A stretch of 64,000 nt of DNA, taken from Guillardia theta CCMP2712 (taxonomy: Eukaryota; Protista; Cryptophyta). Shown here piece after piece: positions 35,914 through 58,051 of the stretch; positions within the stretch are counted from its first letter, which is position 1, and the number at the start of each line of letters is the position of its first letter. Location: assembly GCF_000315625.1 (NCBI RefSeq), contig NW_005434657.1, forward strand, positions 411,319-475,318. The letters run 5' to 3'. The notes under the pieces were generated by a model. The model made no database searches. It was not told where the DNA came from and saw only the letters and a list, made by a program, of their open reading frames with translations. The translations under genes and the position numbers were made by a program.

Positions 35914-38900
35914 TCATTCAGATACGCACATTTCCTGTTCTCGGTTGTAATTCGAACTCGTCAAGGAGGAGCTGAGAGATTGACTGATGTCAACATCATC
36001 ACATGATGCAGGAAACAAGCTGTTACGCTGAATTTGCTTCCCTCCCACGTCTGTTGGCGCTTCCAGTCGAACTTCTGTGGGAAGAAGTTTCAGTGGAGGG
36101 CAGAGAAGTGAGAGGAGGAAGAGGAGGACGTTGAGATGGAGGAGCTGGTCAATGCAGAGGTAATGATAGTTGCAACAGTGATAGTGATGGAGTGGGAGGT
36201 GTAGAGAGGACAGGAGAAGGTGGCAGGATGAGGAGACTGGAGGTAACGGAGAGGAGGGAGGTAGCAACGAGGAGAGGAGACGGAGTTGACTACCTCCTGC
36301 TGCACTTTCTTCTCCTCCTTGACTTGCTTCTCGTTCTGCCCGCTGTGATGCTGCTTGTGGTTGTGGCTCATCTCGGGGAGGGAGAGGAGGATGGAGTGAG
36401 CCAGGCTGCTGCTGGAGGAGGAGCAGACGGGAGCAGAGCTGTGCCGCCGCTCCCTCACCCTCTGTATGGGATGATTCATTCCGTTGCTTTCCTCCCTCAG
36501 ATTCGCCCGAGGGTTCTCGGAGCTCGTCCTCTGCTCTCGTCGCTCGTTCTCCTTGTCGTCTGTGGAGGTCGCCCCGACGTCGCTGGAGGATCGATGAGAC
36601 TTGTGGCGGCTCTTGGAGTGTTTGCGCTCGTGCTGCAGCTTGTTCAGAGCATCCTTTGTTGACTTCTCCATGCTGTCCATCGAGAGGACGAGGAACTTGA
36701 GGATGAGAAGAATGGTCCTGATCCTGATAGGCTCTGTCAGAAACTCCTCCTCCTCGCATCCTCCTCCTCGTCTCCTGCTCCTGCTGCCCCAGCCCCAGCC
36801 CCTGCTCTTACTCCTGCCGCTGCTCTTACTGCTGCCGCTGCTCTTACTCCTGCCCCTGCTCTTACTCCTGCCCCTGCTCTTACTCCTGCCCCTGCTCTTA
36901 CTCCTGCCCCTGCTCTTACTCCTGCCCCTGCTCCTTCCTACTCCTCAAGCTCTCCAGTTCTTACTGTCGGTTGTCGGCTTCGAGCATGGCGTTCGACATC
37001 TCTCTCATCGCAAAACGTTTGAGTTCAACGTACATCCTGCATCAGGGAATCGTCAAACAAGAGAAAGAAGAAAAAGTAGAACCAATGTAAGAAGAAGACA
37101 AGAAGCAAGACAAGAAGCAATAGAGCAAGCAAGAGAACAAGCTGCTCTTACATGGATCTGAACTGCTCCGCGTCGAACTCTCCGTCCTCATTGCAGAGAC
37201 TCCCATCACACGTCAAACTGTCCGGGAGATTGTCAAAATCATCGATATCGACATTGTTTTGATCATCATCCCCATCATCATCTCCATCGTCATCTCCATC
37301 GTCATCTCAATCGTCATCTCCATCGTCATCTCCATCATCATCTCCATCATCATCATCATCTCCATCATCATCATCATCATCATCATCTCCATCATCATCA
37401 TCATCTCCATCACCATCATCACCATCATCATCATCATTGTTATCATCATCTCCATCATCATTGTTATCATCATCTCCATCATCATCTCCATCATCATTGT
37501 CATCATCGCATCATTGTCAGTCACGATGAAGCTCGTCCCTTCTCACCTTGCAAAGTCTCCTTCTGTCATGTGAATCGAATCAGACAGCGGCAGCTTGCGC
37601 CTGCCCAAGCATTCAGCCCTCCTCCTCCTCNNNNNNNNNNNNNNNNNNNNNNNNNNNNNNNNNNNNNNNNNNNNNNNNNNNNNNNNNNNNNNNNNNNNNN
37701 NNNNNNNNNNNNNNNNNNNNNNNNNNNNNNCCTCCTCCTCCTCCTCCTCCTCCTCCTCCTTTCCTACTCCTCCTCCTCCTCCTCCTCCTCCTCCTCCTCC
37801 TCCTCCTCTTCCATCCTCCTCCTCCTCCTCCTCCACTTCCTCCTCCTCCTCCACTTCCTCCTCCTTCCTCCTCCTCCCTCTTCCTCTCTCACTCCTCTTC
37901 CTCCACACCTGGAACATGGTAAAGAGAGATGCGCTGAAATTGCCGAAGAATTCCGGGTGATCCTTGCCGAAGAGATGGGTCGCCATGACGGCATAGACGC
38001 AAGTGATGAGCATCATGATCATGAACGCGTTGATCAGAGGGACCAGGGCAGCGGCCAGCGCTCCCATGATGCGATTGAGAGCCTTGAGCTTCTTGAAGAT
38101 GCGGATAACTCGGAACATCCTGAGGGTTCTGAAGAGAGAGACGAGCCGGAGGGTCTTGGAGTCCACGACGTAGGACCAGACGGACAGGCAGACGACGAAC
38201 AGCTCAAAGATGTTCCACATGTTGGAGTAGAAAGGTTGGAAGTAGTTGTAGGAGCGGGAGAAGAGATTGATAAGAAGCTCCTGCCCCGGATACTTCAATG
38301 GACGCAAAAGAAGGGGAGGAGGAGAAAGGCTGACGAGAGGTGTGAGAAGGAACGGGAGGGGGGAGGGAGCGACGGAGATCAGGAGGGAGGGAGGGGGGGA
38401 GGGAGGGAGGGAGGGAGGGAGCAAGAAGCGTTCGAGGGGTAGGCGGTGGAAGGGGGAAGGAGGGGTCCACTTACAAATGCGAAGACCATCTGCCAAGATT
38501 GTCAGTCATCCCCCACTGAGACCACAAGGAGTCCTACCATGATGCAGAAGTTTATGAGGGACAGGATCGAGTACATGGCGTCCGTCTCCTCCAGCTGCAC
38601 CTCCGCCTGGATGCAGTCGAGCGAGAAGTTCGCGATGATAGAGAGCGCGATGAGCACCTGGGAAAAGATCGACTCGTACACTTGCAGTGTCCTGAACCTG
38701 GCCCACTCGAACCAGCTTCCCCCATGCTGCTCGATCTCCTGCGCTCTCTTCATACTCGCCAGCTGATCCTTAACCCCCAGCTGCAGTGCCGAGCACCAGC
38801 TCTTGACCTCCAACGCGGTCGAGGAGTGGAAGACGTACGCCCGCCCTCCGTTCCTTCCGCTGGAGACCGTCTGAATGACGAATGCAGTCTCCTCCTCCTG

Positions 38901-39811
38901 CGACTGCGGTTCATCAACCTCCTTCACGAACGCGATCTCGTGGAGGGGGACCCAGTCACTCGCTTCTTCCGCGCCCTCATCCAGGAAGACGAACGCGTCT
39001 TGGCACAAGATCGCGTGCTTACTCTTCCAGCTCACCAGCGCTGTCACTTCCTTCCTTTTCAACCTCCCGTCCTTGATCCAGCTGCTAGCAGGAGGAAGGT
39101 GGTACACCGTCTCAACCGCCTCCGCCTTCACGGTGATGGTGCCGTACTTGTTCGACCCTTTGTTCTCCTCCACTTCCAGGTTCGACCGATTTACCTCCCC
39201 TTTGATGACAGACTTCAAGTTGGTCTCGTACCCTCCGAGAAAGTCTTGCTTTGACAAGTCTGTGGTCCCGATCTCGTCGATGTCGTAGATGTCAAACTTG
39301 ATCTCTTGATGCAAGTTGGGTATGAAGTCTACCTCTATCTTCCTTGTGAACCTGTATCAATCAAACTCAGCAACAACGGCTCTATCTCAACCTCCTGACC
39401 GCTCACTTTGGGTTCAGATTATCTTTCATTTGCTCAGTTCGCCCGACCTGCAGAGCAACAGTCAACGCTCGCCAGTCTCTCTGTCATGCTGCGCTTGCTC
39501 ACTTCCACCCAGTGATTGTTCTTGTTCTTGGTAGAGACCTGGACGTGCAGTCACACGTCGATCAACATATGGAGCATGGAGAGTATACCACACAGGTAGG
39601 GTCCGACTTCGACAGGAAGTCTTTGTTCACCAGGTTCCTGCAAGCTTGTCAACACAGTGAGCGGAGGGACAGGTTGGCAGTACGAGCACTCGATGGAGAG
39701 AAGGTACGCCACCAGCTTCCCCTTGTCTGGCAGACTTTCCTCAGACGACTCCATGATCGGGGCAGGCTTGCTTGCTGCAGTATCGAAGCCATTGCTGTGA
39801 GCGATGGGCAT
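35914..39811 (-). CDS. C2 + PH + single-domain (6TM) voltage-gated cation channel; filter and S6 probably hidden in the N gap
   Basis: Copine-like C2 (CRNLVNKDFLSKSDP, KFDIYDID, QDFLG). PH (KDGRLKRK..WKSKHAIL..AFVIQT..VKSWCSAL). S3 WNIFELFVV, S4 LRLVSLFRTLRMFRVIRIFKKL, S5, pore helix FGNFSASLFTMFQ. Confidence 0.8.
36805..36930. repeat. 18-bp intronic tandem repeat (CTGCTCTTACTCCTGCCC)
   Basis: About 7 visible copies. Confidence 0.85.
37260..37505. repeat. Degenerate (CAT)n intronic microsatellite
   Basis: catcatctccatc array. Confidence 0.85.
37631..37730. other. Assembly gap (100 N) inside the channel gene
   Basis: Run of N. Confidence 1.
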
Positions 39812-43617: not shown

Positions 43618-44942
43618 ATGCCCCCCAAGTTCGACCCGTCGCAGATCATCGAAGGTGAGGAGGAGGAGGAGGAGGAATGGTGAAGAGGAGGACGAGAAAA
43701 TCAGGAATGCCAAGCACCTGGTGGAGAAGGAGAAGCAGGAGAGAAAGGGGCTCGCACGGACTGGGATAGCTGCGAACAGGAACTCGTGCGGATGAAGGAT
43801 CGCGAGCAGGGGAGAGAATGAGTCGATTCAGAGAGGATGTCAAGTGAAGACAAAAAGCAGGAGCTAGAGTATACGTGTGACGTGCTAGAGGACGTTCAAT
43901 GTGTAGTATAGAAGGAGGTAGACAAACAATACTCCTTGATTGGTGAGTGTTGACAACATGCAAAAATGTGGATCAAGGGTCTTTTTGCTTTATGCATGAC
44001 AGTATTGCACTCCTGAATTAGCTTGAGTGTTTGAGGTATTTGTCACGATTTTGATGTGTAATCCTGTGAAGTTTTTTCTTCGAACAAGAATGACATACTA
44101 TCTGCTGTGCTTCCTTTGTTTGGTTGAACCCGTATGGAGCATATACAAGACACGTATACAAGACAGTTTCTAGCTCAGGGGGAGGGAAGTTGCTGCACAT
44201 TAGACGGTGCCGTGTAGTTCTTGGGCTCTGTCCCACCCGCTGCTCTCTCCCTTGTACGAGCATCTGAAGTCGTTTCCAGTTTCCATCCGTGTCAAGGGAG
44301 GCGAGGTTCCCGGAGGCTCCTCCCTCGCCCCCAAGATCGGTCCTCTTGGTATGGTAAGACGCTCATGACCTGCCGGCTCAGCAGCGCCTGACATGCTGCA
44401 GTCCCCCAAGAAGGTCGGTGATGACATCGCCAAGGCCACCAAGGCCTGGAAGGGAATGAACGTTACTGTCAAGCTTATCTGCCAGAACCGTCAGGCTACC
44501 GTAGTCCTCGTGCCCACCGCGTCCTCCCTGGTCGTCAAGGCGCTCAAGGAGCCAGCAAGAGATCGCAAGAAGGTCAAGCACGTCAAGCACAGCGGCAACA
44601 TCTCCATGGATGAGATTGTCGACATTGCCCGCCAGGTGAGGGGGGGAGGCGATGATTCTGCTGCGGCTGCTGCTGCTGCTGCAAGTATTCGTTGTTTGTG
44701 TTTTCTTGTGTGTTCACCTGCTCTGGCTGATTGTTTGCTCCAGATGCGTGACAAGTCCATGGCTAAGGACTTGAAGGGAACTGTCAAGGAGATTTTGGGA
44801 ACCGCTTTCTCTGTGGGTTGCACTGTTGCTGGCAAGTCTCCCAAGCAGGTGCAGGAGGAGATCGATAGCGGTGAGAGCGACTCGCGACATGCGGCAGACG
44901 CTGATCCTTTGTGCAGGGGAAGTCACCGTCCCGGATAAGTAA
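43618..44942 (+). CDS. RPL12: 60S ribosomal protein L12 (uL11), 5 exons
   Basis: [72 protein letters not shown]. Confidence 0.97.
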
Positions 44943-57869: not shown

Positions 57870-58051
57870 NNNNNNNNNNNNNNNNNNNNNNNNNNNNNNN
57901 NNNNNNNNNNNNNNNNNNNNNNNNNNNNNNNNNNNNNNNNNNNNNNNNNNNNNNNNNNNNNNNNNNNNNNNNNNNNNNNNNNNNNNNNNNNNNNNNNNNN
58001 NNNNNNNNNNNNNNNNNNNNNNNNNNNNNNNNNNNNNNNNNNNNNNNNNNN
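57870..58051. other. Assembly gap
   Basis: Run of N. Confidence 1.

Follow-up and report, generated by a model that had tools for sequence, protein, structure and literature searches.

A candidate voltage-gated channel gene of Guillardia theta combining a copine-type C2 domain, a PH domain and a single channel repeat

In a 64,000-nucleotide stretch of the genome of the cryptophyte Guillardia theta CCMP2712 (contig NW_005434657.1; C17:411319-475318, hereafter the window) we identified a spliced protein-coding gene on the minus strand, extending from 39811 to about 36090. On balance its product appears to be a one-repeat subunit of a voltage-gated cation channel of the EukCatB/NavEh kind, equipped with a C2 domain, a PH domain and an EF-hand-like tail, and we propose that these three modules subject the channel to feedback by Ca2+ and lipids. 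From its N-terminus the product would comprise a copine-derived C2A domain, the PH domain, a long helix, the voltage-sensor helices S1-S4, S5 and the pore helix, then a part missing from the assembly, and finally the EF-hand-like tail. The gene structure, obtained by three-frame translation with a test of every proposed border, has ten visible exons with GT-AG borders and consistent phases (for exon 1 the donor only) and an additional tail exon of ambiguous start; its short GT-AG introns are typical for genes of this genome. Homology and domain searches, the Pfam scans included, were done exon by exon, and the fold prediction covered exon 5; the genome searched was the 87.1-Mb assembly of 669 contigs. 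The intron positions held in common with copine genes, a test of reading phase at an assembly gap within the gene and a test for selection on its two sides are new to the present analysis.

The channel module and the PH domain

Exon 7 (37909..38280; this and all following exons lie on the minus strand) encodes the end of S2, S3, S4, the S4-S5 linker, S5 and the pore helix. It passes the Pfam Ion_trans model (PF00520, E 2.3e-17) and, in a search of PDB sequences, matches solved Nav, Cav, NavAb and NavEh chains with E-values of 1e-14 to 1e-21. Direct reading of this exon reveals the S4 pattern R-x2-S-x2-R-x2-R-x2-R-x2-R-x2-K-x2-K, in register with the S4 of the family described below; the voltage sensor combines an S4 of four Arg plus Lys with acidic partners in S2 (Glu in 'FAFELL') and S3 (Glu in 'WNIFELF'). 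The pore helix FGNFSASLFTMFQ closes the exon at 37909, with '...FTMFQ' and in phase 0. Exon 5 (38538..39351) supplies S1 together with the first half of S2, and the middle of S2 comes from exon 6 (38475..38489), a micro-exon of 15 nucleotides with AG/GT borders in phase 0 that reads 'MVFAF'. A paralogue 188 kb away on the same contig (GUITHDRAFT_104646; locus L013, protein model P0018) has 'LFFAF' at the equivalent place and shares 77% identity with exon 7. The micro-exon is kept both in this paralogue and in a metagenome orthologue of the latter. S1-S5 and the pore helix are present in the gene, and exactly one Ion_trans repeat is found in the paralogue and in family members.

The kind of channel is suggested by an intron-less family member of the same genome (L009), whose 618-residue open frame comprises a PH domain, S1-S6 (filter TGDSW), a coiled coil and EF-hands. 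Among solved structures its pore module is matched best by NavEh (PDB 7x5v, 8j7m), with an E-value of 1.3e-19 versus about 1e-15 for bacterial Nav channels; its '...LFQVLTGESWSEA...' aligns to NavEh '...MFQVITGDSWASA...', and S6 is nearly identical at '...NVVVAVLLD'. We accordingly place the gene, provisionally, in a PH-bearing cryptophyte subfamily of the EukCatB/NavEh kind, a class assignment that reflects the match scores of this family member; with the gene's own exon 7, four-repeat Nav/Cav chains score above NavEh (E 1.4e-14). The earlier note on this DNA, made from its letters alone, had described a C2 domain followed by a PH domain and by S1-S5 with an Arg-rich S4 and a pore helix, and this order is borne out by the Pfam matches to PH and Ion_trans, by a tblastn match to copine C2A and by the reading of S4. 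Its view of a one-repeat voltage-gated channel likewise stands, with the amendment that the closest kind is probably EukCatB/NavEh specifically. The micro-exon in S2 and three exons of an EF-hand-like tail beyond the gap are features additional to that description.

Pfam PF00169 detected the PH domain on the stretch 38505-39356 of the minus strand, at E 1.2e-8 and with 35.8 bits where the cutoff is 25.1. When exon 5 was modelled with AlphaFold2 from a 14-row alignment, the predicted local distance difference test score (pLDDT) was 84-95 across the PH part, which forms seven strands and a C-terminal helix. The top matches of this model in a Foldseek search of the PDB are the PH domains of GRK2, TAPP1, SKAP55, Akt1 and DAPP1 (probability 1.0, TM-score by target about 0.8); a PDB sequence search with the PH part gave no match. 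The N-terminal 79 residues are poorly modelled, as expected for half a C2 domain. Helices were predicted at residues 179-209, 213-226, 228-251 and 258-270 of the exon, corresponding to a 31-residue helix, a short helix, S1 and the start of S2, and in this model the PH domain is linked to S1 by helices with short breaks only. By direct reading, the PH beta1-beta2 region '...IKDGRLKRKE...WKSKH...' carries Lys or Arg in the customary positions, and it exceeds the family consensus in basic character.

The end of the C2 domain, the whole PH domain, S1 and half of S2 share a single stop-free exon (39351-38538), and the fusion is therefore present in the DNA itself. This bears on the alternative, which the earlier note had itself listed against its proposal, that C2/PH and the channel are two separate genes or that the gap hides further channel repeats. 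The gap does block direct reading of the middle of the gene; against this stand the unbroken exon, the one repeat in the paralogue and all family members, and the length of about 130 codons that in all of these separates the pore helix from the counterpart of the first post-gap exon, and we regard this alternative as highly improbable.

About 90 places in the genome match exon 7, and no fewer than 17 loci (>=17) have, immediately upstream of the channel match and in the same orientation, a match to PH, which often shares its open frame. One G. theta member, GUITHDRAFT_112959, already carries the UniRef name 'PH domain-containing protein'. Transcript-derived proteins of Hanusia phi (P0043, P0045, P0046) and one MMETSP transcript unite PH and Ion_trans in a single open reading frame (ORF). 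For a protein of Geminigera cryophila (P0010) the precomputed Pfam domains include Ion_trans and EF-hands and PH is not among them, no dedicated PH scan having been run on it. The PH domain is a family-wide feature in G. theta and other cryptophytes, and only the C2 domain is special to the present gene and its paralogue. As a separate observation, a more distant member (L012, C1:75853-79206) has an EF-hand pair (Pfam EF-hand_7, E 5e-10, residues 160-221) inserted N-terminally, after a weak partial match to PH and before S1, and its filter region reads '...AAGMSDGW...'.

The C2 domain and its relation to copine genes

The C2 domain is split over exons 1-5, and because of this spread no single exon passes the Pfam C2 model. 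Exon 1 (39684..39811) contains the start codon and strand beta1 ('...LVAYLLSIEC') and ends in phase 2 at a GT donor. From the ATG at 39811 to '...IEC' it encodes 42 residues, the same length as the lead of the paralogue, which ends '...TIQCE'; the upper limit given for the gene in the earlier note is this ATG, and a second possible in-frame ATG lies at 39754. Exon 2 (39589..39637; 'NLVNKDFLSKSDPTCV') encodes C2 loop 1, has AG/GT borders in consistent phase and shares 94% amino acid identity with the paralogue. It is followed by exon 3 (39503..39538; 'VSTKNKNNHWVE'; AG/GT), whose 12 codons have a 12-codon exon as counterpart in a copine gene of G. theta (L021), and by exon 4 (39407..39447; 'VGRTEQMKDNLNP'), which ends in phase 2 with a split codon as in copine genes. 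Exon 5 opens with the last C2 strands, including loop 3 ('YDIDE...D'), before continuing into the PH domain, the long helix, S1 and S2.

A tblastn search of the whole window with the C2A domain of a copine (P0074:1-135, from a protein that passes both Pfam C2 and Copine) matched exons 2, 4 and 5 with a summed E-value of 1.3e-13, and the match to exon 5 reached 47% identity across 62 residues. Likewise, the phmmer matches of residues 2-82 of exon 5 are copines, and the protein model of the paralogue passes Pfam C2 (E 9.4e-9). Direct reading identifies acidic residues of the kind that ligate Ca2+ in C2 domains, namely '...NKD....SDP...' in loop 1 (exon 2) and '...YDIDE....D...' in loop 3 (exon 5), as in copines, and Ca2+ binding by these loops is putative.

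Genome-wide, the C2 part of exon 5 matches only this channel gene, its paralogue and two loci on contigs C50 and C39. The latter two are genuine copine genes with C2A, C2B and a vWA/copine domain (L021:4350-6800 on C50 and L022:3295-5260 on C39). All four intron positions and phases are identical between the C2A exons of these two genes and the C2 exons of the channel gene: the common breaks lie after '...IEC' plus two bases, after '...DP.CV', around the 12-codon exon ending in '...W.E', and after '...NLNP' plus two bases. Similarity to copines extends as far as '...YGTI.V.AE', and from '...LPP...WIK.G...' onward the protein matches the channels that have only a PH domain. This sharing of intron positions and phases shows that the C2 domain was captured from a copine gene at the DNA level, with the junction inside what is now exon 5; the graft took in exons one to four of the donor and a portion of its fifth. 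Neither a second C2 nor a C-terminal copine/vWA domain was found in the gene, where C2A is followed by the PH domain and then by the channel. It is a channel with one borrowed copine domain, and not a copine.

Among the channel loci of this assembly C2 occurs only in the present gene and its paralogue. The filter TGDSW and S6 are visible in the latter, and its public protein model (P0018) is faulty in that it skips half of the PH domain, leaves an intron unspliced behind the pore helix and lacks the S6 exon 'VVLVNIVIA'. An environmental orthologue of the paralogue, on a metagenome contig (L020, sample ERZ930071) of 91% DNA identity to it, has the C2 exons, an unbroken PH domain, S1-S2 and the micro-exon, and runs into the beginning of the exon that follows. 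It offers independent support for the C2-PH-channel layout.

The assembly gap and the integrity of the gene

The pore helix is followed by an interval (37601..37908) in which simple repeats of the (GGA)n type lie on both sides of an assembly gap at 37631-37730. Its 208 visible letters consist of these repeats and an intron end, and no frame codes for anything beyond low-complexity sequence. The reading frame does not carry over from one side to the other: exon 7 closes in phase 0, whereas the first letter of the next visible exon (37600-37547) is the third base of a codon (phase 2), and a direct join in phase 0 reads AQAAAV and then a stop, after 6 codons. In the paralogue the counterpart interval, between the pore-helix exon and the '...RKLPLSS...' exon, spans about 1.28 kb with about seven short exons of altogether some 130 codons. 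These encode '...IVTGDSWAS...', S6 ('...AFFFISYVLIAG' then 'VVLVNIVIA'), '...LLDEFIS...', a coiled-coil stretch and the first EF-hand. By homology, about seven exons for the filter, S6, the coiled coil and the first EF-hand would be missing from the interval 37601..37908. The statement in the earlier note that the selectivity filter is not visible and probably lies in the gap agrees with this comparison, which places the filter there. A candidate filter after the gap, '...IHMTEGDFA', was rejected: it is homologous to the paralogue tail '...IHLTENDF', which is downstream of S6, and it is therefore not the filter.

Three exons follow the gap. The first (37547..37600; 'RKLPLSDSIHMTEGDFA') starts in phase 2 and is part of the EF-hand-like tail, its counterpart in the paralogue being the homologous 'RKLPLSSPIHLTENDF' downstream of S6. 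The second (37152..37217; 'LTCDGSLCNEDGEFDAEQFRS'; AG/GT, consistent phase) encodes an EF-hand-like loop, is 71% identical to the paralogue and aligns with '...LTENGRFCN...EF...QFQEIM' of family members. The third (36965..37036; 'MYVELKRFAMREMSNAMLEADNR'), with tested borders, continues the tail and is 74% identical to the paralogue. Scanned on their own, the three gave no Pfam match; in alignments they correspond to the second EF-hand-like half of the tails of paralogues, and those tails do pass Pfam EF-hand. The tail exon (36090..36723; '...IRTILLILKFLVLSMDSMEK...' and then a low-complexity tail) is an open frame whose acceptor is at 36723 or 36717, with additional introns possible. Its beginning is homologous to '...RVILLILKLLIISMDNLE' of the paralogue, and a Pfam scan of it returned no match. 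The homology-supported frame stops at 36092-36090; the lower limit of 35914 in the earlier note derives from an ORF in another frame.

Two repeats were observed in the introns of this part. A (GAT)n-like microsatellite at 37230-37520 reads as poly-Asp in one frame; its word depth in DNA contigs is 200-570, versus about 3-6 elsewhere, and it is therefore a genome-wide repeat. As a coding block this Asp-rich segment was rejected in favour of an intronic one: a stop codon interrupts its frame, and the exons on either side join in the right phase when it is spliced out. Inside the intron preceding the tail exon, at 36790-36930, lies a tandem repeat of an 18-nucleotide unit (CCTGCCCCTGCTCTTACT-like).

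Several observations weigh against the reading of the locus as an intact channel gene of this kind. The binding of Ca2+ and lipid is predicted from motifs only. Neither the selectivity filter nor S6 occurs in the assembled letters, and the 100 N of the gap fall short of the roughly 0.7-1.3 kb that would be required. None of the DNA contigs from three runs crosses 37374-37894, and a query with the filter-to-EF-hand segment of the paralogue found the missing exons on no other contig of the assembly, where it matched only other family members at up to 59% identity (<=59%). In about 6% of one raw RNA run we found 2 reads and no splice junctions, and the splicing of the gene model is predicted from sequence. 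Word searches with exon 5 and with the paralogue model found no annotated protein or orthologue of the gene within the length ranges searched; the sole match of the exon-5 search was the environmental orthologue of the paralogue (P0041), and an exhaustive search of representatives gave the same single strong match. Lastly, the only other C2-bearing copy is itself broken as assembled: an exact 26-nucleotide tandem duplication in the PH exon of the paralogue (L013:6156-6209), lacking in the metagenome contig L020, disrupts its frame.

Much of this would also suit an alternative in which the exons for the filter, S6, the coiled coil and the first EF-hand were truly lost by a deletion between simple repeats, leaving a recently broken gene or pseudogene and a gap as short as written. 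The 100 N, the frame-breaking direct join, the lack of the missing exons elsewhere in the assembly, the scarcity of RNA, the lack of an annotated product in the length ranges searched and the equally frame-broken sister copy all count in its favour. However, none of the ten visible exons has lost its open frame, its GT-AG borders or the phase that it has in the paralogue, the simple repeats on both flanks are a common cause of assembly breaks, and the DNA contigs from the three runs end at these repeats instead of joining across them. Moreover, a comparison of gene and paralogue upstream of the gap gave proportions of nonsynonymous and synonymous differences (pN/pS) of 0.21/0.54 over 314 codons, and the three exons downstream of it gave 0.195/0.89 over 60 codons. 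The downstream exons have therefore been under selection for most of the time since duplication, and both flanks of the gap have been under purifying selection since this old event. This calls for an open frame through the middle over most of that time. Because both flanks bear this mark of selection, we judge it fairly probable that the gene is intact and merely unassembled at the gap, and a true deletion unlikely; in the organism itself the missing exons are most likely present, and the assembly lost them to a gap flanked by simple repeats.

Elsewhere in the window, the ORF at 44393-44938 on the plus strand resembles, by eye, ribosomal protein uL11/L12 and is unrelated to the channel gene, and a second assembly gap, written as 182 N, occupies 57870-58051.

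Proposed mode of action and comparison with known channels

If the gene is intact, its product would form homotetramers, like EukCatB/NavEh channels, and depolarisation would move the voltage sensor, with its S4 of four Arg plus Lys and the acidic partners in S2 and S3, and so open the pore. The filter is probably of the Asp type, as in the TGDSW of the paralogue and family members. In EhEUKCATB1 of Emiliania huxleyi the substitution E305D (TGESWSE to TGDSWSE) turns a Na+-selective channel into a Ca2+/Ba2+-permeable one (bioRxiv 10.1101/2020.04.29.068528), and with an Asp-type filter the present channel would therefore pass Ca2+ as well as Na+. At the inner leaflet, four C2-PH modules would flank the voltage sensors. 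With rising Ca2+ the C2 domain would attach to anionic lipid, and the basic beta1-beta2 region of the PH domain would bind phosphoinositide; together with the EF-hand tail, the state of Ca2+ and lipid would feed back onto gating or onto the location of the channel. A stricter form of this proposal, which we put forward only tentatively, is a self-contained feedback in which the entering Ca2+ makes the C2 domain, helped by the PH domain, clamp to the inner leaflet beside the voltage sensor and thereby shifts gating.

Membrane targeting is the role of copine C2 domains and of many PH domains, which favours an alternative in which the gene is intact and C2 and PH only place or anchor the channel, for instance in a particular membrane or at the flagellar base, with no effect on gating. 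The retention of the PH domain throughout the cryptophyte subfamily, regardless of filter or tail, fits such a role too. On the other side, an integral membrane protein needs no lipid-binding domain to reach a membrane, and in the structural model the helical tie between PH and S1, with its short breaks, suits mechanical coupling. In addition, currents of the related EhEUKCATB1 are absent in a Ca2+-free external medium (bioRxiv 10.1101/2020.04.29.068528). As none of these counterarguments is decisive, we consider a purely positional role possible, if rather doubtful.

Should the proposed feedback channel be real, it would have no precedent, in the literature that we searched, as a voltage-gated cation channel with an in-built C2 domain, and it would be an instance of exon capture from a copine gene in cryptophytes. 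EukCats and NavEh are recent models for the rise of fast Na+/Ca2+ signalling outside animals, and their published members have a short N-terminal helix and an EF-hand tail. In the PH subfamily, and in the two genes with a copine C2, sensors of lipid and Ca2+ would sit directly on that side of the channel where the voltage sensor lies, a modular and testable case of cytosolic sensors grafted onto a voltage-gated pore, for which the common intron positions provide an unusually clear record of the history of the graft. G. theta is already a source of optogenetic channel tools, and its channels are of practical interest.

The papers on EukCats assign cryptophyte single-domain channels to clade B and list coiled-coil, ion-transport and EF-hand as their only domains. 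Full-text searches of the literature found no description of PH or C2 on single-domain voltage-gated channels, in keeping with the statement of the earlier note that this architecture is not known from characterised channels. Among known channels, NavEh (EhEUKCATB1) is, like the predicted product of the present gene, a one-repeat eukaryotic voltage-gated channel, a homotetramer, and the pore helix and filter context '...LFQV.TG[ED]SW...' recurs in the family. Its architecture consists of an N-terminal plug helix, S1-S6 and an EF-hand-like domain (PMC9114117); a C-terminal EF-hand pair is described for EhEUKCATB1 (bioRxiv 10.1101/2020.04.29.068528). Unlike the present gene, however, NavEh has this short N-terminal plug helix and neither PH nor C2, whereas our gene begins directly with C2 and is devoid of an Arg-rich N-helix; in NavEh, S5 and the pore helix are also separated by a long extracellular loop, for which our gene has no counterpart, and the NavEh filter is TGESW (Glu, Na+-selective), whereas the cryptophyte paralogues have Asp (TGDSW).

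Bacterial Nav channels such as NavAb and NaChBac share the one-repeat, six-helix plan and a similar S4 and pore helix (E about 1e-14), but they are prokaryotic, have no cytosolic N-terminal domains and end in a coiled-coil tail without an EF-hand. Copines (C2A-C2B-vWA) resemble the gene in their C2A domain, to which its C2 is 41-47% identical with the same acidic loop residues, and differ in the second C2 and the vWA/copine domain that the channel gene lacks. Also related are the PH-bearing single-domain channels of cryptophytes, with the layout of PH, S1-S6 and EF-hand and the same helix joining PH to S1; these are without C2 and at most 50% identical (<=50%) to the gene from S3 to the pore helix, against 77% for the C2-bearing paralogue. 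The paralogue is the same in the order C2, PH, channel, EF-hand, in its intron positions and in the micro-exon of S2, and differs as an old duplicate would, with saturated synonymous sites and 47-54% identity in C2-PH beside the 77% from S3 to the pore.

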